Assembly (NCBI GenBank): GCA_965240325.2
Contig: OZ251226.1
Location: forward strand, 1,922,001-1,986,000
DNA length: 64,000 nt
Reading direction: 5' to 3'
Source: Rebecca billardiae RCC1528
Lineage: Eukaryota; Protista; Haptophyta
Part shown: one piece after another, positions 13,555 to 58,396 of the stretch
How positions within the stretch are numbered: position 1 is the stretch's first letter
Layout: each line of letters opens with the position of its first letter
Translations under genes and position numbers: made by a program
Notes under the pieces: generated by a model
Database searches by the model: none
Told to the model about the DNA's origin: nothing
The model's input: only the letters and a program-made list of their open reading frames with translations

Positions 13555-14666
13555 CAAGGGTGTCCAGGGTCCGCAACAGCCAGTGCGCAGCGCGGCAGAG
13601 GCTGGGGAAGAGGCAGGTCGCCGCTCGCCAGTGGGACTCGCCCGCCCGCCGCCGTGCACGGCGGCGGAGCCGCTCGCGCCGTGCGCTCCTGCGGCCGTCG
13701 GATCGGGCTGCGTAGGCGGCGCGCGGCTTGGGCCGTCGCTGAGCCACCCAGCGCCCCTCGCTGCGCCGCGCGCCTTCCTCGTCCTCGCCTCCTCCGCGCC
13801 TTGAAGCAGCACGCACACGCGCGGCGCCGCCACAAAAGCAGCGCAGGCGCTCGCGTGCAAGCGCGCGCGCGCAGCGCGCGACGGGCTCGACTCAGGGCTC
13901 GCGCCGCTGCGGGGGCATGCAGCACCATCACATGCGCGCGCGACGCCACCTCGAACTTGCGCATCGCTGTGACCGTCACGCGCCAAATGCTCACACGTCC
14001 TCGTGTTGAAGTAGGCCCAATCTGACCAGAACCTGCCATGCGTCAGGACGACTTCTTAGGCAAGACACGATGACAGCTACGTACGCGGCGCTTCTCAGCA
14101 AGCGTGGAGACCACAAGAGAAGCGCACGCAAGCATGACCGTCCCCGCATCGATCGCGTCGACGTACTCAAGGCCCGTTGTGGAAGCTTCCGTCGCACGTG
14201 TGATGATGCCAAGTCAGACCATTTTGTAACGTGCATCAGCGTGCACTGACGGTCAAACGCGCAGGCTCGAGGTGGCGTCGCGCGCGCATGTGATAGCACT
14301 GCATGTCCCCGCAGAGGCTCGAACACCGAGTCGAGTCCGTCGCGCGCTGCGCGCGCGCGCTTGCACGCGAGCGCCTGCGCTGCTTTTGTGGCGGCGCCGC
14401 GCGTGTGCGTGCTGCTTCAAGGCGCGGAGGAGGCGAGGACGAGGAAGGCGCGCGGCGCAGCGAGGGGCGCTGGGTGGCTCAGCGACGGCCCAAGCCGCGC
14501 GCCGCCTACGCAGCCCGATCCGACGGCCGCAGGAGCGCACGGCGCGAGCGGCTCCGCCGCCGTGCACGGCGGCGGGCGGGCGAGTCCCACTGGCGAGCGG
14601 CGACCTGCCTCTTCCCCAGCCTCTGCCGCGCTGCGCACTGGCTGTTGCGGACCCTGGACACCCTTG
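13555..14666. repeat. long inverted repeat / fold-back palindrome 1
   Basis: Arms about 13555-13955 and 14267-14666 are reverse complements; GCCCAGC occurs on both flanks. Confidence 0.95.
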
Positions 14667-14927
14667 GCCCAGCCTAGCTCGCCGGCTCTGCGCTCGCGGG
14701 ATCGTCCACACGCACGGGAGCGCGGCGCCGTCGCCCGCTCGCCCGAGACGCGCGCGTCCGCCGCGCAGCGCGCGGCTGAATAAATGCAAGGCGGAAAAAA
14801 AAAGCGCGCCGATTTTCTGAGTTCTCCGACCCTGGGTGCCGTGTCCCCAGTGGAAGCCGACTCCCTTCCTTCATGGCCGCGGCCGCGCGGCGCCCTTGCG
14901 GAGGCGGGAGGACCAACGGCGAGCACA

Positions 14928-16097
14928 ATGCGGCCGCGACGAGCCGCCGCGCGCATTCTGCTCACGGTGTGCGTCGTGCTGCCTCCCGCGCCTGCGCCAG
15001 TCGCGCCGGGGCCTCTGGACTCGTTGCACACGCTCGTCGTGCGAAACAACGGCTCCCTGGCGGCCATCGTCTCCGTCGCCGACACTTCCCGCGTCTCGTT
15101 GGAGCACGGGCTCCGCGGCTTGCGTGTCGCGCAGCGCATGAACCCACGGGCAAGGGTGATCGCGGTGCGGCCTTCGCGCATGCGCGACGCAGTGGTACGC
15201 GCCGGGCTTGGCTTCTTCCCACTGACCCACTCGAAGGAGTACGACCGGCTCTACCAGCACTCGTCGGTCAACCCGCGCCGCTTCGAGCTCTTCTGCTTCG
15301 AGCGCTACCGTCTGGTGCTCAGCGCGCTGCGCGCGGCGCGCGCCGATGCGGGGGCCGTCGCCGTCGTCGACGACGATCTGGTCGTCATGCACGACTTGGC
15401 CGACCTCGTGCTCCGCGCACCGCCGGGCGTGCGCTCCGCCCACGTGGCGCTCCCGGTCCTCGGCGCGCTCACGATCGCGTCTGCGGAGGCTCTGCGCCGC
15501 TTCGTGGCCTTCACGATCGCCGCGTGGTCGCTCCCGTCCGAGCAGCTCCTCGCGCTCGTGCGCGCGCACGGCGTGCGCACAGCGAGCTGTCCCAGCACGG
15601 AGCGCTGCGCCGTGCCACGCGCGCTGCGCTGGGGCGAGCCGCTGCTCCAGTTCCAGCAGTTCAGTGACATGTGGATGTGGATGGCCTTCCAGGCAGCGGG
15701 CGCGACAGGAGGTGGCGCGCGCGCACGGCTGCCGTTCGCCGATCGGCTGGTGTCCGAGACCGGGGGCGCTGTCAAGGTGAGCTCCGCACCGTATGACTGG
15801 GCGACGCGCAACCGGGTCTGCGTGCCGGTGCCGCAGTGGTGCAGCAGGTACAGCTGCTCCCAGCCCAGCGCGGCGTCGTCCAGTGGTCTGCCGGCCGGGC
15901 TGGCCGCGCATGCCGACGGCCGTCTCGAGGACGAGCGTGAGCGCCTGCCGCTATGCTGGGCGCACATGCATGGCAGGGCGAAGACGCCCAGAAGCGGCGC
16001 CCTCGACGCAGTTCTGAGAGCCGCGTGCGCAACGGGAGGCCCGCCCGTTGGCTTCCGGCCCTCGTGCTCGGCGCACGGCCACGGGTCGGCGGGCTGA
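14928..16097 (+). CDS. hypothetical secreted/type II protein, possible nucleotide-sugar transferase
   Basis: Hydrophobic N-terminus; YQHSSVNPRRFELFCFERY followed by VVDDDL (DxD-like) and FSDM. Confidence 0.6.
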   Translation: MRPRRAAARILLTVCVVLPPAPAPVAPGPLDSLHTLVVRNNGSLAAIVSVADTSRVSLEHGLRGLRVAQRMNPRARVIAVRPSRMRDAVVRAGLGFFPLTHSKEYDRLYQHSSVNPRRFELFCFERYRLVLSALRAARADAGAVAVVDDDLVVMHDLADLVLRAPPGVRSAHVALPVLGALTIASAEALRRFVAFTIAAWSLPSEQLLALVRAHGVRTASCPSTERCAVPRALRWGEPLLQFQQFSDMWMWMAFQAAGATGGGARARLPFADRLVSETGGAVKVSSAPYDWATRNRVCVPVPQWCSRYSCSQPSAASSSGLPAGLAAHADGRLEDERERLPLCWAHMHGRAKTPRSGALDAVLRAACATGGPPVGFRPSCSAHGHGSAG

Positions 16098-16611
16098 TCA
16101 CCCATGGCCGAACGAATTTACTATGACGATAGGTAACTACATGCGCCACTAGGCCTTCCGGGACGTGTCTGAGTACTATAGCAGTGTCATAGGGCGCGGG
16201 TTACCAGCCGACTGCCGAGCAGGCAGTGTTGAGTGAGTGTTCCGATGTCAAGCTCATGACTCGCGGTTCAATAATGAGTTTGCATCATCAGCATTCATCT
16301 CACTTGCACCATTACCCAGACTCGGAGTTCAGACCGCCACCAATCAGTCAGCTCGCTACTCAGGTGCATCATGATGCCACCTCGACTGTACTCAAGCTAC
16401 GAGGGGCGGCGCTGCCGCCTGAGTCACTCTGACTCGTCTGAGCCGGGTCCGATCGTCATGTGATGTGATGATTCGTCGCGAATGGACCAACGACGGCCTC
16501 GTCATTCTCGAGCCATCGTGCACTCCGCCGGTCGAGACTTGGCGAGTTGGCGCAAGGCGGCCTTCCGTTTGGGTTTGATGTGGCGGATGGCCACCGAGCT
16601 GGAGAGCTGCG

Positions 16612-18641
16612 ATGACGCGTGAGCTGAAGCGCGAGCTCGCCGCGGCGGAGGAGCGTGGCGACAAGGAGGCGCAGCGGCGCGCCCTGCGTGCGCTCGTCGA
16701 GAGTAGCGCGCGCGCTGGCAGCTCCGAGCAAGCCTCGCGCTACGCTGCGCGATGGTCCTCCATCGCCCTCGAGGAGGACGAGCACGCAGACGCGGCCGCG
16801 GCGGAGTTCTGCCGCGCGCAGGCGCTCGCTCGTCTCTCGCAGCGCGGCGCGGCGGAGGAGGCGTACGGCCGGTGTATCCAGTACGCAAAGCAGTACACGG
16901 AGACTGGCACCTTCGACCCAGAGACGTACGAGATCCAAGCGAGGGCGCATCTTTTCCGCGCGCGCGCACTCGCTGGGCAGGGCGGCGCGAGCGCAATCGT
17001 GCGGCGAGCGCGCGAGGAGGGGAAGCACGCGCTCAGCGCGGCTCGGCGCTCGGGCAATGCTGAGCTCGTGGAGCGCGTGGAGGCGGCTGTCGAAGAGATG
17101 AGCAGGCTCGCTCCTTCCGCCGAGACGATCGATCTCACCGCCGCAGACGGCGGCGGCTCACTCGCCCCTCGGGCGGGCGCGGACGCGGAGGCGTGTCCAC
17201 GCGCGCGCAAGCCCGGCGCCGCGCGTGCGCACGGCAGCATCGCTGCGCGCGGCATTCGCGGCCCCGTCGTCGTGCGAGGAGGCGCCGCCGCGGCCGGCAC
17301 TACCCGCCGGCACGCGGAGGCGCCGCGCGCGCCCGGTCCCCACGCCGGCGCCGGTCGGCAGGCCGAGTCCCGCCGAGCGCGCGCCGTGCACCCCTACTTC
17401 GCGTCCCACGGGTCGGCGGTGCGCACGAGCGCGGAGCACGGCGCAGCGCGAGCCGGGGCGGTCGGTGGCCCGAGCGCGCCGCCGCAGCCGCCTCTGCCCT
17501 CGAGCCTCGCCGCGTGGGCGAGTCTGCGCGCCGCAGATGCACCGCTTGCTTTGCCGTCGGCCGGCTCAGCTGCCGTCCCCGCGGCCGGCCAGGCCGCGGC
17601 TCCGCACGAGGGAGGGTCAGGGCGCCCGCTCGAGGACTGCACGTTGCGCGCATCGAATCTAGGAGGGGCCCACGGCGCTCCTCCGGCGCACGCGGCGACG
17701 GCCGCGTCGGTCGCTGGCGAGGGACGCGCACCATCTGCGCGCACGTCGCACGCGGCGCCTGCGGGCGCCCAGTCGGCCGCGGCAGCTGGCGCATCGGCCG
17801 CGGCGGCCGACGATGACGAGGACCTGGACGAGGACATGACGTGCACAGTGTGCCAGGACCTCATGTACCGCCCCATCAGCCTGCCGTGCGGCCACACATT
17901 CTGCAAGGTGCGCGCGCCGCGCGCGCGCTCGCAGATGCCCCGCGCCAGCCCCAGCCGCGTGCTGCGCCACGCGCACACAGTGCTGTGGACCCCCGCTGAC
18001 GCTCGCGGCCGTCTCACGGCTGCGCGCCCCCTCCGCAGGGCTGCTTGCTCAAGTGGCAGGCGGTGAAGGGCACGTGCCCGACGTGCCGCCAGGCGCTGCC
18101 CTCGCTCGTCAGCGCAGATGGCACGGCGGCCACGACGGGCGCGGCTGTCAACACCGCCCTCTGGAGTCTGATCCAGCGCAAGTACCCGGCGCGTGTCGCC
18201 TCGATGCGAGCGCAGAGCGAGGCGGCCCTGCAGCAGGAGGAGGCGGCCGCGGCGGCAGCCGCCCGGCGGCAGCGGCTGATGGCGGACATGACGGCTCGGC
18301 GCGCACTCGCCGCCCGCGCGGACTACCTGGCGCTGGTCAAGCAGGCCCTCGAGGCGGGCTGCTGGCGCATGTGCCGCTGTGCTCCTCCGATGGTCACGGT
18401 CCCACGCACGCTGCGCAGGCCGGGCGATCGGGTGCGTGCGCGCCTGCGCGGACCGCGGCCACGCGCGGTATGCTCGTGCATCACTCAGCGCTCACCGTGC
18501 TGCGTGCACCCACCGCTGATGCCGCCGCCTCCCTCTGTGCCATCCCACGCCGCGCGCCCTTCTCAGCACGACGGGCGCGTGTACTTTGCATGCCCACGGC
18601 CGCAAGAGAGCTCCTGCGGCTTCTTCGAGTACGAGTACTGA
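16612..18641 (+). CDS. C3HC4 RING finger + GRF-type zinc finger protein (introns 17908-18038, 18432-18566)
   Basis: Spliced CTVCQDLMYRPISLPCGHTFCK|GCLLKW...CPTCR; C-terminal CRC...HDGRVYFACP...CGFFEY. Confidence 0.85.
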
Positions 18642-19143
18642 TAAGCTAATGCTATGTGCTGACGATCGTAATTGCACGATAGTCGATACGCTGGTGATAC
18701 GAGCGCGCTGCATCACCGACACCGTCTTCCCCGCTGGCGCGCGGTACTAGCTGCTGTACTCACCGGCGGCAGACTGGTCTTTGCGCAGCGCGCTGCGCGG
18801 ACGACACCATCACCGCATCACTCATAGTCATCATCATCATATCATCATCACATCGTCATCACGTAGTCCGAATGACACTTGTCAAGTGACTTGACAGCAG
18901 CCGCAGCAGCGCACCGTCGAGAACATCATGAGTCACATCGTGATCGTCGCGTTGTACTCATCGTCATCAGCAGCGCGCTTAATGATGCGCCTGCTTATTC
19001 CAGATCGAAATAATAAGTATTATACGATCGCGCGCGTATGAGTAATCGTATAGTCGCATATCTGATGATCATCAGCAATAACTACATCCGTCGTCGTACC
19101 TAGCTGGGCTCTTCTCAATGAAAGTGGTTGACCATCATCATCG

Positions 19144-20919
19144 TCAAGCAGCAGACGAGGAGACCGCGTCGACGGCGGCCGCGCTCTCGGGATGCTCTCG
19201 CCGCACGTAGGCCTCGAGGGCCTGCCGGCCGACGCGCACCGCGTCGGGCAGGCGCGCCTCGTCCTCGTACGCGATGTCGTACCTCGGGCCCTGGTACGCC
19301 AGCTCGTGGAACACCTCGATGTCCTTGCGCCAGAACGTGAGCTGCTTGCCGTACACCTGTGAGATCCAGTCGTCCGAGTACCAGTTCTTGAAGGTGGGCG
19401 GGTAGTACCAGCCGAAGATGGCGCGATGCGTGCAGTGGGCGAACGACTGCGTCATCAGCCGCGGGTTGTTGGTGTCCAGCGGGCCGGTCACGCCCACGTT
19501 GGGCAGCACCGGGTTCTCGCGTAGCGTGTCCACCAGCTCCTGCGCCCAGCCGGCCGTGCGCAGGCTGATGTCGTCATTCAGCTGATAGAAGTAACCGCAC
19601 CCGTCGGAGCACGAGCGCTCGAAGAGCGCGTTCCACACCCAGCACGGCGCGCCGCGCATCCCGCGCATCTCGAGCAGCCGCAGCGTGATACGCCCCGCCC
19701 CGACGAGCTCGGCCACCACGCGCTCGAGCTCGAGCCGGTTCGCCGCGTCCGCGTAGAACGGGTCGTCGTCGTCGTGCCCCACGTACACGATGTAACGAAA
19801 CCGGGTAGGGTCGGCGTCGCCGGCGGCCGTGCGGACGAGGGAGGGCAGGAGCACGGTCGTGAGCGCGAGCTCGCGCGCGGTCTGCCCCGGCCTCGCGCGC
19901 GACGCCACGCCCAGCGCGATGCACGCCGGCGGCTGCGGTCGCGCGCCGCCGCCGCTGCCGCCGTCCGCGGGCTCGCCCAGCCGCGCGAGGTTGAAACGCG
20001 TGTGTCCGCAGGATGGCTGCTCGCACGCGCGCCACGGCGGGCCCCGATCGCCGTGCGCGCGGACGGAGACGCCGTCCGTGCCGAGGCCGCGGAAGTTGAG
20101 CAGCGCCCCGCCGCCGTTGCGCAGCCCCTCGCCGTCCACGGCCCACCACGCGTCCTCGTCCTCCTCGCGCGTGCCGTCCGCGCGCACCGTCCACGCCTCC
20201 GGCGCCGGCGGGTAGACCACTCTCACAAACCGGTGTGTGCGGCGGCTGCGCAGGACGAACCAGCCAGGGGCGGTGTCGGGCGCGCCGCCGGGCCGCGGGC
20301 GCGGGATCACGTCAAACTGCGTGTCGCTCTGCGACGGCCGCCATCCCGACGCCACCAGTAGGCCGCCTTCGTCGACGCGGACATAGCGGCGGTTGTGCTC
20401 GCAGTGAATGGCGTGTGCGCTGCCGCTGCCATTCGGAACGCCGCCAAAGCTCCCGTGCTGCGGGCGGGAGAGCCGTGTCCGGGCGCGCGCCGCGCCACGC
20501 GTGCCTGCTTCAGAGGCCCCGCCGTACCACGCGCCGCCAAAGAGCTGCGCGATCCAGCTCCCCGCGGCCTCGTCGCCAGCACGCGCCGACGGCGGGAGCT
20601 CGAGGCCCTTGCTCACAGCATCAGCGACAAAGCGCTCAGCCACCTTCCACAGGAGCTCGTCCTCATCGAGAGCGGGCGGGGCATCGAGCTCGCGAGTGCC
20701 TTGGCTCGTGCGCGACGAGAGGCGATCGAGCCCTCGATCCTTCTGCCCGGAGTGCAGGCGAGGCGCGTACAGCATCCACACCTGCGCGCATGCGCGCGGG
20801 GCCGCCGGGTCGCCGTGTCATCCACAGCGCACACGCCGTGTGGAGCCGGCTCTGGGCGCGGCGCGTACGCAAGTCAGGATGACAAGCGTTGATAGCACGA
20901 TTCCGAGGGCGCGCAGCAT
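19144..20919 (-). CDS. type II membrane GT-A (GT2-like) glycosyltransferase with a beta-trefoil/fascin-like region (intron 20782-20868)
   Basis: Spliced anchor MLRALGIVLSTLVILTC|VWML; YVGHDDDD, YFYQLNDDI, FKNWYSDDWISQVY. Confidence 0.75.
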
Positions 20920-21708
20920 GCCCTCTGCGGGCCACGTGCGATCCTGGCCACGTGGCCTCACAAGCTGTGAGCGATCGGCCCGCCGCCGCGGGCCGCCATC
21001 GTGGCCCGCGTCATCCGTGTACGACGCGATCTGTATTCCCGCAAGCGGCTTATTTCTTTTACTTTTTCACGTCGCCGTGACCGAGACGGCCACTCGCCCG
21101 ACTGGCGAGTGGCGACTCGGCTGCCAGCCTACCAGTCTTCATAGCCGACTGACGTGCCTGGCGATAGTGCCGCGATACGTGCCGGAGACACGCCTGACGC
21201 GCTCAGGCCAAACGGGCACAGCTCGGACGATGAAGTAGTCGTCACTTCGCGCGCGGCGCCATTTTCATCCGGGGTGATCAGCATCGAGTAAGCTAACTCT
21301 GCTAAGCAGTAAGCTCATGTCGTCATGGACATATGATCGATTGATCGCAGACTCGTCTCCGCCTCCGGTCGGTGACCTGACAGTCCTGGGGCTGACTGTC
21401 GCCCGTCTCGCCCGGCACTCGGCAGCCGGCTGGGCGCTGGCACCGAGCAGTGTCAGTGTCACAGCGCCAGCGGCAGCGGGCTGAGGCTAACACTCATCAT
21501 CATGACGCCTGACGGAGTGACCGGCGACGAAGTCAGCGCGCCGCAAGCCAGCCGATCGCCATCTGCCGCTGTCGAAGATTGATTAGCAGACTCATTACTC
21601 ATTAGTCATTAGGACAATGTTGTTATTGATGCCATTCAGATGATCGAATGATGCTGATGTCATCATTATCATGGCAGCATGAGCATCAGCGCGCGCCTGC
21701 AAGTGCCG

Positions 21709-24374: not shown

Positions 24375-25424
24375 TGCCCGGACTATTGTGACACGATTCG
24401 AGATCATTCCCGCAGATGAGAGTGCACTGAAGAAAAACAGTTCGCGCGATAAGAGTGGCCCGCTAGATAGTTATTAATGACGATATCGCGGCTCCAGCTG
24501 ACTGCCGAGTAACTGCCTACTCTCTACACAGTCTACTCTGCTGCTCGGACAGGCGGACAGAATACTAGCTCGATCGGCTACAGAGTACAGTACTGACTGT
24601 AGAGTACTCGGATGGCGGCGTCGTCCTGTCTTATGTCTAAATGTAGTCAGCTCATTCACTGCTGTGAGACTATAGTAACGCTGCCTGCTATTTCATGTAG
24701 AGTACGTATTCACTACGACTGTACATAGCATGCCTCAGCAGAGTCCGAACTAGTCGTAGAGACACTACCGCGCTGTAAGCTACTTACCCGACGACTTCTC
24801 AGAGTTCTCTGAGTACTTCTGAACTAGTTCACGGTCCGTCTCTGGTCTCGGAGCCACTGCTGTGCCTATTCATCGATCTAAAATTTGGCATGATGTGCGC
24901 TATGTCAAGTAATAATAATATTGGTGCCAGCTGCTTCTTGAATCATTGACTCTTTGTCGCGGCGAGTTTGAATTATTATTATTAGCTATACCGAATATAT
25001 CAAAAAGACGAAGCCTCTAAGTCTAACCTAATAATTGGCACCGTGTACATAGAGCTATAAGTTAATATTTGACGAGATCATAATATTCATCATAATAAAT
25101 TATTATTATTATTATTAAATAATAATAATAATTATAAGTGAGATTGCCGGCGGACCGCGCACTCGCGCATCTTATGCGACCACAAGTGTGCACGTTAAAA
25201 CATAGAAAACTGTAACCCGTACGGCGCCTCGGCGCCTTCACCGTTCACGGCTTTATCAGGCGGTCCGATTCAACACGATTCGTCAGAGTCTGCTGCTGGC
25301 CGTGACCAATTCGCGAGTTCACGCGCCGCGGGCGGCGGATCCGGTGCTGCGTGACACATCACCCAGCCACTAGCCAGTGCTCCCACGTCGGCGGGGCGCG
25401 GGCGCCAGGCGCATCTGCGTCTCG

Positions 25425-26066
25425 TCAATCATCGGCAGTTGCGGGAGCAGCCTCTTGGCTCGCGGGAGCCCCGGCATTTGGCGCTGTTGCGCTCTCCTCC
25501 TGGTCCTCTGCAGGTGCCGCCGCCGCTGCTGGCGCCTCAAGCTGCTTCTGCTCGCCGGGAGCAGGGACATCTGCGACTGGGGCGCCCGGCAGCGATTCAG
25601 ATTTGGGGTGGCCCATGATGGTCTCACGAAGGACCTCCATCCTTCGCTGCGCCTCCCACCACGGGCGGTACATCAGTGCATCGGGGAAAGACCGTCCCGT
25701 GACGGCGACGCGCGTCTCGTATGTGCAGTCGGCGAGGCCCTCTGCACGCTCAGCCTCCTCCAACTTGGCGTGGTATTCTTTTTCGATCTCTGCACGAACG
25801 TAGTTCTTCCCAAGCTCTTCCCACGTCTGACGTGCCTGGCTAGAGCGCGCAATCTCCATTCGACGCTTGGCCTCGTCGCTCGTGCGGTAGAAGAGACTGT
25901 CATTTTGGCGCCGGCCAGTGACGGCCTGCCGTGTTGCCTCTGTGAAGTCTGTGAGGGCACCGTTTGCCGCGGCTTGTCTGCTGGCCTCTGAGCAGTCCGG
26001 GAGGCGCTCGCTCGGATCGACGTCGTCCCAGAAGCGCTGGCGCCCGGTCTCGAGGAGGGCGTGCAT
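25425..26066 (-). CDS. hypothetical protein
   Basis: 213-aa ORF with normal composition, a helical/coiled-coil middle and an acidic Ala-rich tail. Confidence 0.6.
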   Translation of the reverse strand: MHALLETGRQRFWDDVDPSERLPDCSEASRQAAANGALTDFTEATRQAVTGRRQNDSLFYRTSDEAKRRMEIARSSQARQTWEELGKNYVRAEIEKEYHAKLEEAERAEGLADCTYETRVAVTGRSFPDALMYRPWWEAQRRMEVLRETIMGHPKSESLPGAPVADVPAPGEQKQLEAPAAAAAPAEDQEESATAPNAGAPASQEAAPATADD

Positions 26067-26272
26067 CGACAGCCGAGGGCGGAGGGCGGAAGGCGGCGGC
26101 GGCCTGCTCGCAGTCGGCTAGAAGAATTCGTCAGTGCAACGCTGCAGGTCCGGATGGTGTCGTCGCAGGGGCGTTCCCCGCGCGGGTCATGCGCCAATAA
26201 AAACTCACGCGCGAAAACAAAGCGCGGAAAATGAAAACGCGCTTGGCGCCGAAGGCGCGCTGGCGTCGATGG

Positions 26273-27174
26273 GCGCTTGGCGCGCGCGCGGCGCGGCGCG
26301 CTGCGGCCGTCGAGTTGCCATGCGAAGGCGGCGCGTTGCGTGCGTGGCATCGGAACGCTGCCGTGCTCCGCATTGCGCCCCGCAGCTCGCTCCTCGTCGA
26401 CTTTGCTGCGCCTACGATCAGCGCGCACGCGAGCGTCGCCTCGGAATGAGCAGCCCGCGCCAGCCTCAGCCGTGAGCACCCGCCTGGCGCGCGATGCGAT
26501 CAACTCGGAGCACGAGCTGCGGCTGAGCGAGGAAGCATGTGCCTGCGCGCAAGCCGCGCCGCCTTGAGACATCGATCGTGCGCGTTGATGCAGCTTCAGA
26601 CGGCTGTCGACGAATGCCCATCAGCCTGCACGAGCCTTGCATGCAGTGGAGATGAAACAACAGACCGTGAGCGCCCTGAAGCGATGAATAGGAGTCTTCG
26701 GGTTGCGTGTGCGCGCAGTGACTCGTGTACATCCATGCATCGCCTGCGCGCGTGGCTGCCGTCATGCCTTGCTTAAGTAGTTGCTCTGATAAGGAGTCCT
26801 TTCAAGGACACCGCGACAATGCGCAAGGGCAAGAAGAATAGTTGCGTGCAAGGTGCGTGCCCTGCTCACGATCGGTGTCTCAAGGCGGCGCGGCTTGCGC
26901 GCAGGCACATGCTTCCTCGCCCAGCCGCAGCTCGTGCCCCGAGTTGATCGCATCGCGCGCCAGGCGGGCGCTCACGGCTGAGGCCGGCGCGGGCTGCTCA
27001 TTCCGAGGCGACGCTGGCGTGCGCGCTGATCGTAGGCGCAGCAAAGTCGACGAGGAGCGAGCTGCGGGGCGCAATGCGGAGCACGGCAGCGTTCCGATGC
27101 CACGCACGCAACGCGCCGCCTTCGCATGGCAACTCGACGGCCGCAGCGCGCCGCGCCGCGCGCGCGCCAAGCGC
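26273..27174. repeat. long inverted repeat / fold-back palindrome 2
   Basis: Arms 26273-26580 and 26867-27174 are reverse complements with few mismatches. Confidence 0.95.
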
Positions 27175-27225
27175 TGTTGCGCCGCAGTCCGGGTTGGCGG
27201 CCGCCACTGCCGCAGCGCCAGTCCG

Positions 27226-27261
27226 GAAGGCAAAGCCCCCGCAGCGGGGGCTTTGCTTTTC
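27226..27261. repeat. short perfect GC hairpin followed by T-run
   Basis: GCAAAGCCCCCGC-A-GCGGGGGCTTTGC-TTTT. Confidence 0.8.
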
Positions 27262-27578
27262 AGGAGCGTGTGGCAGGATCCCGGGAACGCCCTTGAGGAC
27301 ACCGGAGCGGCGGCGCCAGGCTGGAGGCCCAGGCCCGGACGCGCGCGCAGCGGTCGCTCGGCGGCGTACGCGATGTCGGTGCGCGCGATGTCGGCCGCGC
27401 AGCATTCGCGCCCCCCCCACCCTCCCCCGTGCGCGCCGTCGCAACCCGCTCCTGAGAAATTGGCGCCGTCCGCCATCGCCCGTGGCGCTCCTGCCGCCCG
27501 CTGTGCCCCTGGTAGGAGCGTGGTCGGAAGCGGCCGGCGCCAACATCGCCCGAGCCAACAAGCCCAAGGCTAGGATCC

Positions 27579-28311
27579 ATGAACGACACGTGCCCCGAGC
27601 TGTCCTCGCACCTGCAGGCGGAGGAGCGCGCGATCCGAACAGAGACCTTCTCCGCCGTGCTGAATGGAGAGCTCATCCAGCGCTCAAAGGACGCAAAGGC
27701 CCTGGTGGCGGACGTGCACGAAGTGAGCTCGCACGAGGAGGCCATCGAAAAGGGGCTGGTGAAGCGTGTGCTCGCGGCGCTCCACGGGACTCACCGCATG
27801 AGCGTGCAGCTGACGACGTGGCTCGGCACATTCACGCCGCCGCTGAGCGTGGGCGGGAACGCGGGCGTCAGCGCCGAGGTGCAGGACGGCATCTTCTCCA
27901 ACATGCAGCAGCTCGTGCAGACGTGCTCGGACGGCCTGCACCGCATGCTCGCGTTCGAGAAGGAGCGGGCCATGATGCGCCTCAAATGCCTCGAGGAGAA
28001 GGCAGGCTCCGAGTCCGAGCGCGAGGCGGTGTGGCGCCGGTACGAGTCCGCGCTCGAGGAGAACCAACTGCACGAGCTGCGAAAGGTGCGCCGCATGCGC
28101 GTGCCTGCTTGGCGCGGCAGCCCGTTGCCTGTGTCCGCCCAGGTGACCAGGCTCGCGCCCGCCCGGCGCTGCGCTGCGTCACCTACCCGCGATGCGCGCG
28201 GCACAGACTTGCCTCACGCTCAACGCAGATTTGCTATGCGTGGCCCACACGCTGAAGAACAATGGCGAGCATCTCACGACACACAGCAACCAGAATTTGA
28301 CCATGTTCTGA
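27579..28311 (+). CDS. divergent proteasome activator PA28/REG (PSME3-like) (intron 28086-28206)
   Basis: WLGTFTPPLSVGGNAGVSAEVQD resembles the PA28 activation loop (WIQLLIP.IEDGNNFGVSIQE). The spliced end LKNNGEHL...NLTMF* resembles the PA28 C-terminus. Confidence 0.65.
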
Positions 28312-28695
28312 TATTGGGCTTCCGCCTGCAGCGCACACGGCAGCGCACGTCGCTCGCCCCTCGGGTGTTTGCAGCCTGGCAGCACAGAATCTTGCACGGA
28401 TCTTCATTCCTTTGGACAACTTACTTGCACGGCGAGCATCGGCTTTGTACGTCATCAACGATGACAGCTCTATTTGTCGATCATCAGCGCCGCCTTGCAG
28501 GGAACTCCAGTCCTAGAACGGCCACTTGCGGGAGGGCGACTCGTCGGGCCACTAGCATCAAGAGCACGAGTCCGACTTCTCCGGTCACTAGTCGTTGCGA
28601 CGACATTCATCGATGGTACTTCAGCTACGGTACCGTGGAGTGTGGAGTTGGACCAGTACGGTCAGCAGCAGACTGAGACTACGGCGTAATATTAA

Positions 28696-32414: not shown

Positions 32415-33994
32415 GCGAGCGTCGCCATGTACACGTGGACAGGAACCGAGGAGAACATCATTTGCACCGCTTCGTTTTCATCGAGCAGAATATCATCGAT
32501 ATTCATCAGGCGCACGTGTGCGTATTCATCATCAGCCTTCGGGAATTGGGAGTAGCTATTGGCCTTTGCCCTCTGGCGAGCCAGTTGTGCGCACTTTAAG
32601 AGCAGGCCTGAGCAGGCTCGAGGCCACTTTTTTGCCGCTCACGTGGACATGATGCCGAGCACGTCTCACGAGGTGCGCGCGGCGAGTGGCGTCTGGAGCG
32701 CGCGGCTGTGGTGGGCCCCGACGGCCGTCGACATCGCGTTCGTGCCCCGCTCACTCTGAACTCCGCGCGCCCCCGCCGCCCTATCGATCGATCATCGATG
32801 CCTGCGCGCGGAATCGTGCACCGCGCGTGCCGCCCGCGACCGGCCGCGGCAGGCCCGAGCCGCCCTTTCGGGCTCTCGCAAGCACGGGGGCAGCGGCGCC
32901 TGATGGCGGACTGATCGACATCTGAGTCTCCGACTTCACCACGCGCCCCCCTCGTCATGCCTTCCCGGGGTCTCCCACGGAAGACGGACTAACCGAGCAG
33001 GCGACGGTACTGTCTGTACGCTGCCGTGACACACGGCGCCTGGGCAGCGGGCAGTGGTGGCGGGGTCCCGCGGACGTCAGTCTTCCCCTCGCGCCCTGCT
33101 CACCTCGAGTGCGCCGCCACGCGCCTCCGCACGCGTGTCCCATCGATGCGCAGAGCGGCATGCTTGCATGAAAGTTGAAATGGCTGGGTCATCAGCCCGC
33201 GCCGGCAAGTCTGTCTAGCGCTGGACGGACGGACATAGGAGGACGAGCAGCGCGGGCGACGGTGGTGCGCGACGCTCCCAGAGCTGGCCGTGCCTCTGCG
33301 ACGCGTGCCGAGCCTGACCGAGGTGTGTCACCCGGTCCACGCGCGGCGCGCGCGAAGGCACCGGTGCTGTGGCTGCTCGGCTCGAATCCGCGGCCTCGCC
33401 TGGCACCGCGGCACCGTGCTCCCTGGCTGTCAGCTCCGCGTGGCCTGGCGTGCACGTAGAGTTGCGCTCATGCGTCGATCACGCCTCGCGCCCGCCTGTC
33501 GGCCGTCGCGCAGGCGCTGGTCGAACCCTACTCGGACCAGTGCAAATCATCTATCCCGTGGCCGCTGCCGGCGCGCGGTGACGGGACAGCGCGGTCAGCA
33601 GCAGGCGCAGCGGCCCGAACGAATCCGCGGCCCCGCACCGTGCTCCCTGGCTGTCTGCTCCGCGTGGCCTGGCGTGCACGTGGAGTCGCGCTCATGCGTC
33701 GATCACGCCTCGTCGCATCCGCCTGTACACAATATCGGCGCCGCGGCGGCGGCTCGCGGTCAGCAGCAGGCGCAGCGGCCCGAACGAATCCGCGGCCCCG
33801 CACCGTGCTCCCTGGCTGTCTGCTCCGCGTGGCCTGGCGTGCACGTGGAGTCGCGCTCATGCGTCGATCACGCCTCGTCGCATCCGCCTGTACACAATAT
33901 CGGCGCCGCGGCGGCGGCTGTGACTGGGCCCGCCCGGCCCCGGGCGCCCCGGCGGCCCGGCGCGGCCGAGGCGGCGGCGCGCCGCTGGAGTCTA

Positions 33995-37205: not shown

Positions 37206-37238
<33 letters not shown>

Positions 37239-48841: not shown

Positions 48842-48881
48842 CTGTGTTTCGGAACTGCTGGCTGGCGCGCGCGCGGCATCA

Positions 48882-49054: not shown

Positions 49055-49055
<1 letters not shown>

Positions 49056-49089
<34 letters not shown>
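49056..49089. repeat. (CT)n microsatellite
   Basis: Perfect CT run. Confidence 0.95.
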
Positions 49090-49091
<2 letters not shown>

Positions 49092-49387
49092 TGAGGGCCC
49101 CTATATTGTACGCGCCATCAGACTCTGATCCGATCTGCGATATATATATAATGCGCGCAGCATCTTAAACCGGTCTGATGAGTCTCAGTGATATAATGGT
49201 TGACGAATCGTTACATACTGTAATCACTGCTGGTAACTCACTTTGAGCGTCTGCGACTGCGTCACAGCCACAGGGCGCAGCGAGTCGTATAGCGACCACT
49301 CTGATGAACCAGCGTGACGAGCGTAGCTCCGTCGGCACATGATGGCTGCACCGCGCATATCGCGTGATAGGTGCGATGCTGAACTGC

Positions 49388-50711: not shown

Positions 50712-50777
50712 CCTGGCGCCGGTGTTTTTTCTCGCGCAAAGCTGCCATTTTCTTTTTCCACCCCGCTCAATTTCAAA

Positions 50778-52313: not shown

Positions 52314-52495
52314 AAGTGTGCGCTGCAAGGGTGCCGCGGCCCGCGTGCTGAATGCATAATGGCGGGTGCTGTGTGTGTGCTGATCTGATGGAAATTCCGC
52401 AATATTCAAATTCGTCAATAAATTCGGACGTCGTACCACGAAGAAGGTGCGCGCAGCAGCCGGTGCACCTGCCGCAAGTGACCTCGTCGTGCAGC

Positions 52496-53572
52496 ATGGC
52501 CGCCGGCCAACTCATGGGCGGCCAAATCTTGCTCGTTGCCCTCACTAGCGTGGGCCGTGCTCGGCGGGCATTGATGGGCGAGCTGGACGTGGTGGCGGCA
52601 AATGTCTCGTTCGCCACGCCCAAGCCCGAGTGCCCCACCGACATGAACCTTGTGTGCTCTCCTGAGCTGCCAGAGAACGAGGCAAAGGCGGCACGCGATG
52701 CCGAGGCTGTGCGTGTCCGCGAGTTCGGCAGCCGCGACGGCGACGTGAACGTCGCGCCTGGCGGCGGTGACGCAGGAGGCTGGCCCACCAACCTTTCCAC
52801 TCTTGCCGTGGCGTCGGCCTCGCAGTTCGGCCGCGGCGTGGCTCTGTCTACGGAGATGTGTCGTTCGTTCCTGCATGACCCCTCGCACATGTTCAGCTTC
52901 ATGTGGTCCAGTCGGGGCCCGACGTTGAGCGAGACGAGCGCGCCAGGGTGCGCGCCCGTGCGCCATCGCGTGAAACGGTGGTTGGACGCCACGCTGGAGG
53001 GCGCGGTGTGCGCCCGCAACTGGTATGAGGGCTCGCTCGGCTGCAGTGACGCGGCCAGCCGCGTGCCCTTCCCGGGCGGGCGCCTGTCCACGGTGCAGGG
53101 GCTCCTGGGCCCGGCGGGTCGGACTCGGGAGCTGTGCAATGCGCGACTCGGAGTGCGCGACGAGGCATGCTTTGCGTCACGGCAGGCAGCGTGCCAGCGT
53201 GCAGGCTACACCCTACTCTCACTCCGCGGCACTCTGCCGCCGTGGTCGCAGTGCCGAGCGCTCGAGTGGCTGCTCTGCGCACTCACCGACCGACTGCCAG
53301 GCCAGCGCACGGGCGCGGGCGTCGCCTTCGCCATGCCGCCAAGCGAGCTGGACACGGGGTACTTGGTCATGGCGGCGCGGCGACGCACCCCGGCCTATAG
53401 GTCCACCCTTACGTACTACCTTCAGGCGTGCATCACCAGCGTGGTCTGCAGCAACGGTGACGACATCTGGCATCTGCCGCGTGCTGAGGCCGGACGGGCG
53501 TGGCACTGCGAGATCAATCGCACGGCCGTCGAACAGCTTCCGATTTACGTCCGCGCGGCGGCGGCAACCTAG
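52496..53572 (+). CDS. hypothetical Cys/Trp-rich secreted protein
   Basis: Hydrophobic N-terminus; CARNWYEG; many Cys; long ORF. Confidence 0.6.
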   Translation: MAAGQLMGGQILLVALTSVGRARRALMGELDVVAANVSFATPKPECPTDMNLVCSPELPENEAKAARDAEAVRVREFGSRDGDVNVAPGGGDAGGWPTNLSTLAVASASQFGRGVALSTEMCRSFLHDPSHMFSFMWSSRGPTLSETSAPGCAPVRHRVKRWLDATLEGAVCARNWYEGSLGCSDAASRVPFPGGRLSTVQGLLGPAGRTRELCNARLGVRDEACFASRQAACQRAGYTLLSLRGTLPPWSQCRALEWLLCALTDRLPGQRTGAGVAFAMPPSELDTGYLVMAARRRTPAYRSTLTYYLQACITSVVCSNGDDIWHLPRAEAGRAWHCEINRTAVEQLPIYVRAAAAT

Positions 53573-53910
53573 CTAGCCCGCGATTGCGGCGCCTGGCAAT
53601 GAGCCCGCAGGCCGCTGGCCGAGTGCCACGCCACGCCGCGCTGGTCAGTGCCAGTGGTCACCGGCTGAGTCGGCGCTGGTCGGTGGTCCGCGTGCCCGCC
53701 GGTGCCGCCGGTCCGGCGGTCCGCCGCCGCTCGGCCTCATGATCTAGAATCAGGTCTGAGAATCGGAATATATCGTCAATCAGATCCCGCGCTATGTAGT
53801 GCCATGAGTCCCAATGACGATTATGACCGCGCGCACGGCCTGAATCTGTCGCCAGTGTCGGATACTTCCCTGAAGAGTGAAGGCTGAATTTGTGGAATGA
53901 ATCCGTATCA

Positions 53911-54381
53911 TCAAGCATTTGAAGATGTCTGGCCACTCTCTGCTTGCGCGCCCAGCAGCTTGCGCCGGTGGCGAAAAAGTGCCGTGATCACGAACGCTGC
54001 ACTGGGCAGCTGCACTGCCAAGTGGATGGCCGACACGACAGCTACTGGCGTGTAGCCCCCAAACACTACAACGATGAGGATGATCGAGACCAGCGTGATC
54101 ACGAATGTATGCAGCACCAGGAACACTGGCGTGAGGCGGAGCGTACCAGCATCGTCCTTCCCGATCGCGCGTATGGAGCGAGCGGTCTGAACGATCGAGA
54201 GCAAGCACCCCGGTCCAGCCAGAATGAAGCCAAGAAAGTGAAGAGCAGCTGGCGGAGGGCCCATGCGCTCAGTCGAGAAGGAACCATCTGGGCGCAGAAA
54301 CGCGACGATCATGCCGTATACGAAGCCCACGGCACACAGCGCGATGAATAGCTTGAGCGTTGTGACCAACTCGAGCTGCAT
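53911..54381 (-). CDS. small 4-TM membrane protein
   Basis: Four hydrophobic segments in 156 aa. Confidence 0.65.
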   Translation of the reverse strand: MQLELVTTLKLFIALCAVGFVYGMIVAFLRPDGSFSTERMGPPPAALHFLGFILAGPGCLLSIVQTARSIRAIGKDDAGTLRLTPVFLVLHTFVITLVSIILIVVVFGGYTPVAVVSAIHLAVQLPSAAFVITALFRHRRKLLGAQAESGQTSSNA

Positions 54382-54828
54382 GATGTCAAACACGGCGACC
54401 AGAGCGAGCCTCTGTCGGTCGTCGATCGCGACGACGCACGGCTTGGTGTGCTGATGGCCGACCAAAAAGCGCTAGCTTTTTGAGCACAACCCCCTCTGAG
54501 CGCGAGGTTAGATGCCGAGACGAACTGGAGAACTGAAACGGAACTGACGACGCGCGCGCACCCGCCGAACGAAACCTCATACTACTAGTAGTACCGTAGT
54601 AATAGTAGTATGGGGGTAAGCTAGAGTCTGCTACGGCCTACGGCTGACGATCGACGATTTCTGATCCGGACCGGATTGAGTTCGTATCAGTCATCTAGCT
54701 GATACGTACTCCGCCGTACTGCATACCGAAGAGTGCCGTCCGTAACGCAGCTCATGCGTGATCTGCCCGTCACGTTGACCGCAAATGTTGCCAACAGGTG
54801 GCAACATCACGGGCCGACTGAATGCGGT

Positions 54829-54879
54829 ATCTCGCCTGTCTGATGAGCTGTGTGCGTCTCTTATTCTTAGTAAACTGTA
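54829..54879 (-). repeat. solo TA-CAGTTTACT transposon end (copy 3, inverted)
   Basis: Reverse complement reads TACAGTTTACTAAGAATAAGAGACGCACACAGCTCATCAGACAGGCGAGAT. Confidence 0.75.
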
Positions 54880-54993
54880 TGTGTCGGCACCACGCTGACA
54901 CGGTGACGGTCCGACGCCGGCACGGCGTCCACCCGCGGCCGCGGTCACGCAGCGCTCGTGTAGCCATGCTGCCCCGAACTCAAGCTGTTGTCG

Positions 54994-56919
54994 TCATGCA
55001 CTGAGCCCAGCGATAGAGTCAGCCTTGTCGACGCCGTAGTACGAGATGCGAGGGTCGCGCCCGCCACCACCGGGTGCGGCGTCGTGCGGGCCGCTTGACT
55101 CGTCAGCGAGCGTCAACTTGAGCTCGGAGAGCGTGTCGGCGGGCGGGTCGTCCTCGGCGGGTGCGGCGGACGCCGAGCGCGCGAGCTCGGCTTTCGACGG
55201 CTGACGCACGGCGGAGTGCTGGCGGGCGTGCGGCGACTGCTCGACTTGGACGGTCACGGCGGAGTTCTTGCGCGAGCGCGCGTCGTTGAGCGCCACGCGC
55301 ACGCGCGATTCGAGCACGGCGCACTCGCCGGCCGCCGCGGCCTCGAGGCAGCTGCGCAGGTGGTCGCGATGCTTCACGAGCGTGCACTCCGCCTTGTCCA
55401 CCGCGAGCTGCTCGACCGCGTCACCGCCGCCGGGCAGCTCGCACACTTCGATGTCGGCTGCGCTGAAGTCCAGCTCCAGCGCGGTCAGCATCTCCACCAG
55501 CGTCCACAGCCGGCCGGTGAACGACGGGCCGAGGAGGACGAGTACGCTCCGGCAGCCTCCGATGCGCTCGGGCAGGTGTGCGAGCGCCTCGCCGATGGGC
55601 TGGCCCTGCTCGACGCACACCTGGTCCAGCCTGCACGCGCGGCGCGCGCGCGGCGCGCGCGGCGCGCGGGGCGGCACGGCGGGGTGCTCAGCGCGTGCGC
55701 ACGCCGGCGAGGCCCGGGGCTCGCGCCTCGAGCCGGCGCGCCCACGCGCGCCGCGCGCCCGGCCGCGCGTGCGCGCGCGCGCAGCAACACACCACACGAC
55801 GGGCTCGCGGCCCGTCTTGGCGCGGAACGAGGTGCGCCACGCCTGCAGGGCGCGCCACTTGGAGTCCAAGTCGTCGTGGCTGCTGTGCGAGACGTAGGCG
55901 TCCACCTCGCCGAACCGGACGTCCTTCAGAATCGACGCCGAATTCTTCCGCCCCGCCGGGCTGTTCCTCCGCCCTGAGCCGCCCTTGGGCTCCAGCGGCG
56001 GCCCGCCCACCACGCCGCCGAGCTGCGTGCTCGCACGCCTCGGGTCGAGGTGGCGCTTCTGCAGGCTGGCGAGCGAGACGCCGCGCAGCGCGAAGGGCTC
56101 GGGCTCGTCCGCGGGGGGCGGCTTGGGGGCGAGCGCGACGAGCGTGATCGCCCTGAGCGAGACGCGCGCGCGCCTCGCCAGCCGGTGCGCCACCAGCCAG
56201 GAGTTGGGCTCTGTGGGGACGAGCAGGGCGAACGCGAGCTCGGCGGCGCCGCGCACGAGATGGATCGCGCCCAGCGGCATCGGCTCGAGGGGCTCGGCGT
56301 CGAAGACGAGCATGAGGACGGCGGCGGCCAGCCTGGTCAGCCCGATCCCGGCACACACGCCGCGCACGGCGCGCAGCGTCGCGCGCCGCGTGCCGCTCGG
56401 CCGGCCGCGGCAGCCTGCGAGCACAAAGGTGAGGGCGACGGCGACGAGCGCGATGATGGCCGCCGCGGCGCTGCGGATGGTGTCGAGCATGGGGAGGGTG
56501 AGCGGCGCGCCGCTGCCTGCCGTGAGCCATGCGTCCATGTCCACGGCCCCGCCCGTCGCGAGCATCAAGTCCAGGGCTGCCAAAGCCAGGACGAAGATGC
56601 TGACGGCAGCGGCCATGCCGTACGGGAGCACGCGGTCGCACGGCATGACCGCGCTCGCCATGAGCCACAGCGCCGAGAAGCCGAGGACGAAGTTCGCGTA
56701 GAGGGCGAGGTGCATCCAGATCACGGCCAATCCGGCGCCGTCGCTCGCGGAGAACTCGCGGGCGAAGCGCGGCGAGATGAGCAGGACGGCGATGGCCGGC
56801 GCAATCATCATGCCACCCAGGACGAGAAGCGGCGCCTGCACCAAGCGCCGCACGCGCTTCCTCGTGTTGTGTGCGGCTTTGAGCCGCGCATGTATCTCGG
56901 CCTCTGCGGTGTACACCAT
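54994..56919 (-). CDS. multi-pass (~6 TM) membrane protein with C-terminal TIR_2-like domain (intron 55631-55792)
   Basis: Spliced DAYVSHS...VWLDQVC...IGGCRSVLVLLGPSFTGRLWTLVEM matches TIR betaA, betaB, betaC and alphaC (WxxxE). Confidence 0.75.
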   Translation of the reverse strand: MVYTAEAEIHARLKAAHNTRKRVRRLVQAPLLVLGGMMIAPAIAVLLISPRFAREFSASDGAGLAVIWMHLALYANFVLGFSALWLMASAVMPCDRVLPYGMAAAVSIFVLALAALDLMLATGGAVDMDAWLTAGSGAPLTLPMLDTIRSAAAAIIALVAVALTFVLAGCRGRPSGTRRATLRAVRGVCAGIGLTRLAAAVLMLVFDAEPLEPMPLGAIHLVRGAAELAFALLVPTEPNSWLVAHRLARRARVSLRAITLVALAPKPPPADEPEPFALRGVSLASLQKRHLDPRRASTQLGGVVGGPPLEPKGGSGRRNSPAGRKNSASILKDVRFGEVDAYVSHSSHDDLDSKWRALQAWRTSFRAKTGREPVVWCVAARARTRGRARGARGRAGSRREPRASPACARAEHPAVPPRAPRAPRARRACRLDQVCVEQGQPIGEALAHLPERIGGCRSVLVLLGPSFTGRLWTLVEMLTALELDFSAADIEVCELPGGGDAVEQLAVDKAECTLVKHRDHLRSCLEAAAAGECAVLESRVRVALNDARSRKNSAVTVQVEQSPHARQHSAVRQPSKAELARSASAAPAEDDPPADTLSELKLTLADESSGPHDAAPGGGGRDPRISYYGVDKADSIAGLSA

Positions 56920-57076
56920 GACGACGACGCCGCGCGCCCGTCAGATGGCGGCGACGCCCACGAACGCGTTCACAACGCTCGTCGACCGGCGACGTTGATG
57001 ACTCTTGGCGGACCAATTACTACTACTAGTAAAACCGAGTCAGGGAACTCGTCAAGCGTCGCAGGGGTGCCGGGCG

Positions 57077-57108
57077 TGAGGATTCTCCGACGCATCGGAG
57101 AATCCTCA
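57077..57108. repeat. perfect 14-bp hairpin
   Basis: TGAGGATTCTCCGA-CGCA-TCGGAGAATCCTCA. Confidence 0.85.
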
Positions 57109-57330
57109 TTTACGGGCTACGGCGAAACGAGCGAAAAAGCGCCCGAAAATGCCCAAACTCTATAGAAGATTGGTATAGGAGTCGTAACCGCTCACAGGTG
57201 GCGTGTACTCCCTTCATTGTTCATTGACGATTGCTACTGAGTCAACGTTGGTAAGGTATGTCTCAACAATGATCATGTCTCACGGTTTGGTTTAGCCCTA
57301 AACCAGGGACTCCCGGGGCGATCCAAGCCG

Positions 57331-58396
57331 AGGCCACTCGAGCGACTTCGTGTCTGGCGAGGCAGATCGCGCCAGTGCGTGGCGAGGCAGACGCTCGCCT
57401 GCCTCGCCGCTTGGCGAGGCAGCTAAGCTAGTAAAGCCAAGGGGGTAAAGCCGCGGCCGAACTTTACGAAAGCCATATGTCTGCCGGTGCGCCGCCCGTC
57501 TTTTGCGCACGGTGACAAGGGCGCGCGAGGGCGCTTCCTCACGATCCCGAAGAGCGCTGCGCGCGGCGTCGCGTTGGCGGCGGCAGCGGCGCTGGGGTGT
57601 ATCTTGCCCATTCTGCGTGGCGGCGCGCTCTCATGACGCCTCGGCCGCCGCCACGCCATGCGCGACCGGGCGTGTCGCCTTCTTGACGGGCAGTGCACAC
57701 GCCCTTGCAAGCGCACAGCCGTGAAGAGCCGAGAGCGTCCGTCGCGAGCACGCCGCCCACGCGGGATGCGTTATGTCGTCACCGAAGCCACCTTGCGCAT
57801 GCGCTTCGCCGAGTTCGCCATGCGTTCAGAGCAGTCAAGATCACTGAACGAGAGGATGTCATCGGCTGAAATGCAGGTTAGCAGTGCTCATCATAGCTGC
57901 TACCCATGGTCATCCTGGCTCGCACATGCCAGAGCGCGAGCACCCAGTGTCATACGAATAGCCCTGGCAACGCATCCCGCGTGGGCGGCGTGCTCGCGAC
58001 GGACGCTCTCGGCTCTTCACGGCTGTGCGCTTGCAAGGGCGTGTGCACTGCCCGTCAAGAAGGCGACACGCCCGGTCGCGCATGGCGTGGCGGCGGCCGA
58101 GGCGTCATGAGAGCGCGCCGCCACGCAGAATGGGCAAGATACACCCCAGCGCCGCTGCCGCCGCCAACGCGACGCCGCGCGCAGCGCTCTTCGGGATCGT
58201 GAGGAAGCGCCCTCGCGCGCCCTTGTCACCGTGCGCAAAAGACGGGCGGCGCACCGGCAGACATTTGGCTTTCGTAAAGTTCGGCCGCGGCTTTACTAGC
58301 TTAGCTGCCTCGCCAAGCGGCGAGGCAGGCGAGCGTCTGCCTCGCCACGCACTGGCGCGATCTGCCTCGCCAGACACGAAGTCGCTCGAGTGGCCT
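57331..58396. repeat. long inverted repeat / fold-back palindrome 3
   Basis: Arms 57331-57772 and 57969-58396 are near-identical reverse complements (one 14-bp indel); CAAGCCG occurs on both flanks. Confidence 0.95.

Follow-up and report, generated by a model that had tools for sequence, protein, structure and literature searches.

The DNA considered here is a 64,000-nucleotide (nt) stretch from the haptophyte Rebecca billardiae RCC1528 (contig OZ251226.1; G000:C8:1922001-1986000 of a 72-Mb, 41-contig genome with a G+C content of ~67%), which we call the window, and the question it raises concerns three inverted repeats of about 1 kb whose arms are almost perfect complements. What are these palindromes, and what has kept their arms alike? 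The original prediction, drawn from the window alone, took them for an old family of loci held symmetric in place by conversion between arms or by selection on the structure, with hairpin-RNA genes and foldback transposons among the candidates. Genome comparisons identify them as ordinary mobile DNA that adds new members to kinds already known, rather than as conserved hairpin-RNA genes. Because copies are dispersed, have sharp ends and lack coding capacity, and because two of the three sets are flanked by target site duplications (TSDs), we conclude with high confidence that each palindrome is a copy from a mobile family of its own; the three families, all non-autonomous (protein-less), are referred to as families 1, 2 and 3 and represented in the window by elements 1, 2 and 3. 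A conserved hairpin-RNA or chromosomal structural locus is thus replaced by three young transposon families; the observations of the original prediction are partly confirmed and its interpretation is partly supported.

A repeat finder returns exactly the three structures that had been described. Palindrome 1 spans 13553-14668, with arms of 410 nt that are 97% complementary and a centre of 296 nt; palindrome 2 spans 26273-27174, with arms of 311 nt that are 98% complementary and a centre of 280 nt; and palindrome 3 spans 57330-58397, with arms of 443 and 429 nt and a centre of 196 nt. All three are non-coding, as proposed: they lack codon periodicity (a codon-position GC contrast of no more than 0.13 inside, against 0.4-0.5 in the neighbouring genes, where periodicity of G+C at the third codon position, GC3, is strong). 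Searches with the arms return dozens of near-identical matches per arm on many contigs, and whole elements, centres included, are 94-100% identical between loci, with sharp ends and unrelated flanks. This is dispersal, further evident in the exact TSDs of two of the families, and not the upkeep of an old set of loci in place. We counted termini by exhaustive genome-wide pattern searches with the reversed sequence as control. The 20-nt terminus of family 1 has 77 matches at no more than two mismatches (control 0), the 16-nt terminus of family 3 has 113 (control 0-1), and the 13-nt terminus CARGGGCGTTCCC of the larger element that carries palindrome 2, which we call the shell, has 297 (control 0-1), a figure that takes the long family 2 copies and a set of 165-183-bp relatives together; the first 100 places listed for the shell terminus include 29 short pairs and six long pairs. 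Estimated copy numbers are ~30-35 for family 1, ~50 for family 3 and, from a count of the motif described below, roughly 40 for the family 2 palindromes. No pair of termini 2-20 kb apart occurs among the matches listed for any of the three.

The manner of insertion is clearest for families 1 and 3. A 7-bp TSD flanks 19 of 22 independent family 1 copies, as compared with ~0.4% when left and right flanks are mismatched, and a 5-bp TSD with the target consensus nGWCn flanks 22 of 23 family 3 copies; mismatched pairings yield 7-bp or 5-bp duplications in fewer than 2% of cases. Two nested insertions document the process as filled versus empty sites, because in each the nested copy duplicates a sequence that is single in the consensus of its host element. 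One is a family 1 copy at position 21-27 of an older family 2 copy (G000:C11:1176241-1178499; L008:760-3018), where GTCATGC is duplicated and the family 2 consensus holds GTCATGC once. The other is a 263-bp element with CAAGGAG...CTCCTTG ends (CAAGGAGTCTTTA...TAAAGACTCCTTG) that lies within a family 1 copy (G000:C12, L033:2330-2592) and duplicates GTTGCGG, the empty site being the family 1 consensus; this element represents a third family that is CAAGG-ended and makes a 7-bp TSD.

Families 1 and 3 are foldback-like transposons of the cut-and-paste type with terminal inverted repeats (TIRs) of 410-440 bp, in agreement with the foldback candidate of the original prediction, which was right for these two elements. 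A transposase supplied in trans would bind the ends, excise the element and reinsert it at staggered cuts, and filling in of those cuts would leave the 7-bp duplications of family 1 and the 5-bp nGWCn duplications of family 3. In being non-coding, with conserved ends, fixed-length TSDs, tens of copies and positions near gene starts, both resemble miniature inverted-repeat transposable elements (MITEs) and other non-autonomous TIR transposons, but the elements described here, at ~1.1 kb, exceed the usual size of MITEs, 70-80% of their length consists of arms, and family 2 has no TSD. Transib is the only large superfamily with a standard 5-bp TSD, and family 3 is similar to it in duplicating 5 bp of a G+C-rich, weakly palindromic target; it differs in its ends, beginning GAGGCC (GAGGCCRCTCGAG) and not CACWATG, and in its 430-bp arms. 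Drosophila FB (Foldback) elements, with arms built of tandem subrepeats and 9-bp TSDs, are a poor fit, as there are no tandem repeats (score at least 80) within any of the three elements and the TSDs are 7 bp, none and 5 bp; the 9-11-bp TSDs of Mutator and Mutator-like elements (MULEs) likewise differ from the 7 and 5 bp seen here. We note that the family 3 copy in the window has a private 14-bp extra stretch in the left arm near 57438, and that in two places family 3 termini are paired at a distance of just 91 bp (G000:C5:2512336-2512426) and 130 bp (G000:C32:266580-266709); these are probably internally deleted mini-derivatives. The positions of the three elements and their parts are collected in Table 1.

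Table 1. Features of the three palindromic elements, in positions of the window.
Feature	Position	Strand	Basis or remark
Family 1 left TSD GCCCAGC	13548-13554	.	identical 7-mer at 14667-14673
Family 1 element	13555-14666		terminus CAAGGGTGTCC
Family 1 left arm (long TIR), terminus CAAGGGTGTCC	13555-13962	+	repeat finder, terminus count
Bipartite motif, family 1 left arm	13689-13723	-	134 nt from terminus
Family 1 centre (loop)	13963-14258	.	98.5% identical between copies, not self-complementary
Family 1 right arm	14259-14666	-	repeat finder
Bipartite motif, family 1 right arm	14498-14532	+	pattern match
Family 1 right TSD GCCCAGC	14667-14673	.	identical to left
Family 2 whole element (shell carrying palindrome)	26166-27295	+	1130 bp; 9-19 dispersed copies, unrelated flanks
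Family 2 shell left 13-bp TIR CAGGGGCGTTCCC	26166-26178	+	copy comparison
Family 2 palindrome left arm	26273-26583	+	distant homologue of family 1 arm positions 117-356
Bipartite motif, family 2 left arm	26301-26335	-	135 nt from shell terminus
Family 2 palindrome centre	26584-26863	.	repeat finder
Family 2 palindrome right arm	26864-27174	-	repeat finder
Bipartite motif, family 2 right arm	27112-27146	+	pattern match
Family 2 shell 3' subterminal G+C-rich hairpin, then TTTT	27230-27256	+	sequence
Family 2 shell right 13-bp TIR (CAAGGGCGTTCCC on - strand)	27283-27295	-	copy comparison
Family 3 left TSD AAGCC	57325-57329	.	same 5-mer at 58398-58402
Family 3 element	57330-58397		ends GAGGCC, terminus GAGGCCRCTCGAG
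Family 3 left arm, terminus GAGGCCRCTCGAGCG	57330-57772	+	repeat finder, terminus count
Family 3 centre	57773-57968	.	repeat finder
Family 3 right arm	57969-58397	-	repeat finder
Family 3 right TSD AAGCC	58398-58402	.	identical to left

A more complex arrangement is seen in family 2. Palindrome 2 is only part of an element, the conserved unit being longer (26166-27295): the sequences immediately flanking the palindrome are conserved in all copies and the ends of the shell are sharp, and the palindrome is therefore cargo of the 1130-bp element. Over these 1130 bp the copy in the window is matched at 100% identity by one on a different contig, where the flanks are unrelated. The shell shares its ends, ~35 nt on the 5' side and ~75 nt on the 3' side (26166-26200 and 27220-27295 in the window), with the 165-183-bp family (e.g. 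G000:C1:219228-219392), whose members have the same 13-bp TIRs and, in 3' subterminal position, a G+C-rich hairpin that is followed by a run of T; the hairpin stems co-vary between subfamilies. The only conserved mobility parts of the carrier are these ~35 and ~75 nt, comprising the inverted termini and the subterminal hairpin, and palindrome 2 is an internal passenger, distantly related to the arms of family 1, of an element that inserts without target duplication. Contigs assembled from short-read runs ERR14847148-151 enter the family 2 copy by 17-29 nt from both flanks and then stop, which establishes that the junctions are real and that all four data sets contain the copy. Besides the copy that took up the family 1 insertion, six family 2 copies (L049, L050, L056, L059, L060 and L063) are interrupted or truncated within the first 20 nt, which hints at a hot spot of insertion or breakage near that end.

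TSDs are absent from all 19 long copies of the shell and present at one of 20 short ones. The flanks have no target consensus and follow no rule of insertion between A and T or between T and T. A scan for offset or imperfect TSDs yields just a weak excess of 7-mers (5 of 38 sites, against 3%) at inconsistent offsets. One possible explanation, which we offer tentatively, is that a non-DDE enzyme, either a tyrosine recombinase of the Crypton or DIRS type or an HUH rolling-circle enzyme of the Helitron type, mobilises both the shell and the 165-183-bp family by way of a circular or single-stranded intermediate, with the palindrome as a passive passenger. The absence of a TSD in 38 sites with sharp ends is in keeping with this, as are the asymmetric 5' and 3' end modules and the subterminal hairpin; furthermore, the joined ends would, on inspection of the sequence, form 10-bp inverted arms around a 6-bp spacer and so resemble a recombinase core site, and in one copy (G000:C17, L018:1920-1951) the last 18 nt of the right end are tandemly duplicated with a single A between. 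Helitron2/Helentron and tyrosine-recombinase elements also lack TSDs and have short inverted termini, asymmetric modules and a hairpin. However, both repeats of the shell are terminal, its hairpin lies 39 nt inside the end, and the ends are CA...TG and not the TC...CTRR of Helitrons, with none of the targets expected of Helitron or Helitron2. The repetition of the spacer sequence at the flanks, as expected for a tyrosine recombinase, is not seen, the shell terminus resembles that of the 7-bp-TSD families, and no enzyme was found, nor is a Rep/helicase or recombinase partner known; an unpaired shell end that was inspected proved to be a degraded short copy together with a short copy carrying an insert. 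The TSD-less carrier, with ~300 termini genome-wide, is the only part of this system that could lead somewhere new.

A transposase for families 1 and 3 was sought through their unpaired termini and through protein domains. Among the unpaired termini inspected were a 20-nt relic adjoining Tic22 and SET-type genes, relics of 86 and 135 nt close to genes for a peptidase, a zinc-finger protein and a proline-rich surface protein, and the end of a nearly full copy. The one candidate protein is the product of a 1317-codon open reading frame (ORF) on contig 21 (G000:C21:1532842-1536795; L107:3843-7796, - strand), which matches PF21787, the RNase H N-terminal domain of P transposases, at 32 bits (E = 2e-7), above the Pfam cut-off; its only PDB match, to the Drosophila P transposase (6p5a), is colinear yet weak (E = 0.2). 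P-type transposases combine a THAP domain with an RNase H fold that bears a GTP-binding insertion, and in this product a THAP domain was not detected. The 22 kb around this P-type ORF, searched for long TIRs, short TIRs and TSDs, contain only GC-rich low-complexity matches and a direct repeat like that of a long terminal repeat (LTR). A word search for homologues of the ORF was blank, which says little. The ORF may be domesticated, or may be an immobile source of transposase. Next to it we note a pair of 563-bp direct repeats that are 100% identical and separated by 7.2 kb (G000:C21:1524538-1525100 and 1531767-1532329), which looks like a young LTR retrotransposon.

Several results weigh against the interpretation of all three palindromes as mobile elements of familiar kinds. 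Since family 2 and its short relatives have no TSD, their movement cannot be taken to be cut-and-paste. An empty allele was found for none of the three insertions in the window, and the family 2 copy is there in all four short-read runs; metagenome contigs, scanned for empty sites of the family 3 and family 2 insertions, yielded none, and two neighbouring ORFs, in the search for allelic empty sites, were not on record. No autonomous partner was found for any family, the four unpaired ends inspected being relics beside host genes or degraded copies. The P-type ORF is single-copy in the genome and has no inverted repeat, TSD or CARGGG terminus within ~8 kb. For a MULE partner, PF10551 has two matches, both unlinked to these termini. 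The original prediction had set against itself the case that each palindrome be an unrelated high-copy MITE or MULE with a known transposase partner; the high copy number is there, and such a partner is not.

Could the P-type ORF nevertheless mobilise family 1? It would do so if family 1 and the CAAGG-ended elements with 7-bp TSDs belonged to the P/Galileo superfamily, with the bipartite motif shared by families 1 and 2 as a putative subterminal binding site, an assignment that we regard as unlikely. A 7-bp TSD together with long foldback-like TIRs is the signature of Galileo (PMC3573991), an element of the P superfamily in Drosophila, and family 1 is like it in its TIRs of ~400 bp, its exact 7-bp TSD, the large number of copies that encode no protein, the presence of subfamilies and the signs that the repeats have exchanged sequence (PMC3573991). 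Galileo TIRs hold several binding sites for the THAP domain (PMC3688188), and by analogy conserved subterminal sites are plausible in family 1 (PMC3688188), where, as in family 2, the motif stands 134-135 nt from the left terminus; the domain match of the 1317-aa product and its weak structural match point the same way. The ORF has none of the surroundings expected of a mobile source, however, and no THAP domain, a 7-bp TSD is not exclusive to P elements, conservation of the motif within families is no better than neutral decay would give, and family 2 carries the motif yet makes no TSD. Family 1 differs from Galileo also in its haptophyte host, in arms without internal tandem repeats and in that no autonomous copy was found, and the 7-8-bp TSD of the P superfamily is seen in family 1 only. 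As the P-type ORF lacks matching ends, a Galileo-like label for family 1 expresses resemblance in the 7-bp TSD and long TIRs, and not demonstrated membership.

The 35-bp motif itself was accurately described for palindromes 1 and 2: it is present in both arms of each, and 26 of its 27 fixed positions are equal. Its left half had also been reported in palindrome 3, where a match requires a one-base deletion and none is found at up to two mismatches. Genome-wide the motif has 176 matches (control 0), and among the 100 listed all sit in family 1- or family 2-type arms, bar one with a variant spacer; it thus belongs to these two families and is no independent dispersed signal. Perfect matches make up ~57%, which by our estimate equals neutral decay at ~2% per site, so the motif is under no extra constraint within families. 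It is the best-kept island of a wider similarity in which positions 117-356 of the family 1 arm and 9-251 of the family 2 palindrome arm are colinear at ~66% identity, with an alignment score of 58 (z 6.5) against 31.5 +/- 4.1 and a maximum of 46 in 300 dinucleotide shuffles, the reverse orientation remaining at background. Judged by these alignments the arms of family 1 are distant homologues of those of family 2, and the kinship seen in the original prediction is to that extent real. Family 3, whose arms score z ~0 against both, is by the same measure unrelated to either. The palindromes had been said to share no termini; element 1 and the shell of element 2 do both begin CARGGGYGTYC, but that likeness alone is not statistically significant, nor is homology between the terminal 116 nt of family 1 and the shell ends. 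Improbable, though worth stating, is that a single motif-marked palindromic module is served by two mobilisation systems, a Galileo-like 7-bp-TSD family driven by the lone P-type transposase and a TSD-less hairpin-bearing carrier moved by an undescribed, possibly recombinase- or HUH-type, enzyme, with the motif as a putative protein-binding site that makes the module worth carrying. What is new in these data is the composite element 2 with its TSD-less carrier, the test of arm evolution set out below, the genome-wide motif count, the proofs from nested insertions and the single P-type ORF; the results also give exact copy counts and target preferences.

The near-identity of the arms is not the outcome of maintenance in place. 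Private variants, those of single copies, are overwhelmingly one-armed, with ratios of unmirrored to mirrored of 34:5 in family 1, 24:0 in family 2 and 33:2 in family 3 (91:7 in total). Between copies of family 1 the centre is 98.5% identical and the arms 96.0%, and in general centres are conserved as well as arms or better. Because private variants are one-armed and the centre is not less conserved than the arms, we see neither conversion nor selection at individual loci. The centres, which had been thought to retain decayed self-complementarity, show no significant sign of it (z 1.1, 2.1 and -0.6 for elements 1, 2 and 3 against 500 dinucleotide shuffles) and are not decayed palindromes, and there is no excess of CpG transitions, the sign of methylation-driven decay. 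Left/right differences present in at least 80% of copies, ten in family 1 and 16 in family 3, imply inheritance from a source copy. The symmetry is accordingly inherited from the source copies of each family, and the arms drift independently after insertion. Subfamily variants are mirrored in 24 of 64 alignment columns in family 1 (for example the tract at columns 337-376), 13 of 30 in family 2 and none of 11 in family 3, and the two arms of a copy are closer to each other than to the opposite arms of other copies in 22 of 22, 18 of 19 and 12 of 23 cases, respectively. Since subfamily variants are often in both arms and own arms are mutually closest, the alignments indicate that in families 1 and 2 one arm was occasionally converted by the other within the lineages that continued to transpose; such exchange has likewise been proposed for the long repeats of Galileo (PMC3573991).

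These patterns bear directly on the hairpin-RNA genes of the original prediction, in which both arms would be transcribed, the double-stranded RNA diced to small interfering RNAs (siRNAs) and the arms kept complementary by selection. Long, nearly perfect inverted repeats would fold if transcribed, and the adjoining gene starts make read-through or promoter-proximal transcription plausible. Foldback transposons are themselves a source of hairpin siRNAs, and production of small RNAs from the arms may occur as a by-product. As an account of the structures, however, we hold it to be very improbable, given that private mutations go uncompensated in the other arm, that between family 1 copies the loop is better conserved than the arms, that the dispersal of 30-50 copies with TSDs explains the structure, and that none of the three palindromes matches an Rfam family. 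That the palindromes are artefacts of long-read assembly, as chimeric long reads can create false palindromes, can be practically dismissed, as tens of copies share the structure, inherited left/right differences and exact TSDs, and both outer junctions of the family 2 copy are spanned by independent contigs from the four short-read runs.

The setting of the three mobile elements among genes was described correctly in the original prediction, in that two of the three, elements 2 and 3, lie between divergently transcribed genes, as judged by codon phase. Element 1 is ~120 nt upstream of a + strand gene (14784-16097), element 2 is flanked by a - strand gene (25425-26066) and a + strand gene (27579-28676), and element 3 by a - strand gene (54994-56919) and a + strand gene (58743-60221), so that gene starts lie ~100-410 nt from all three copies. 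In this little-studied lineage of algae, copies with long TIRs so near gene starts are likely to be substrates for ectopic recombination and to disrupt promoters.

Genes of the window encode a Copia-type reverse transcriptase, Gcd10p, an RWP-RK protein, an ABC1 kinase and a GT90 enzyme, and the best named relative of its Gcd10p is that of Pavlovales sp. CCMP2436 (51% identity), which places this eukaryote among Pavlovales-like haptophytes. The reverse transcriptase is part of a 1236-codon ORF at 1617-5327 (+) with a Copia-type RVT_2 domain, which indicates an LTR retrotransposon, and a tRNA-Ser(TGA) gene follows it at 6373-6455. An A+T-rich island (~24800-25250, G+C 0.32-0.43) stands out from surroundings of 65-70% G+C ~1 kb to the left of element 2. 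Finally, a 165-bp unit at 33590-33919 is present as a perfect tandem duplication (2.0 copies, 100% match).

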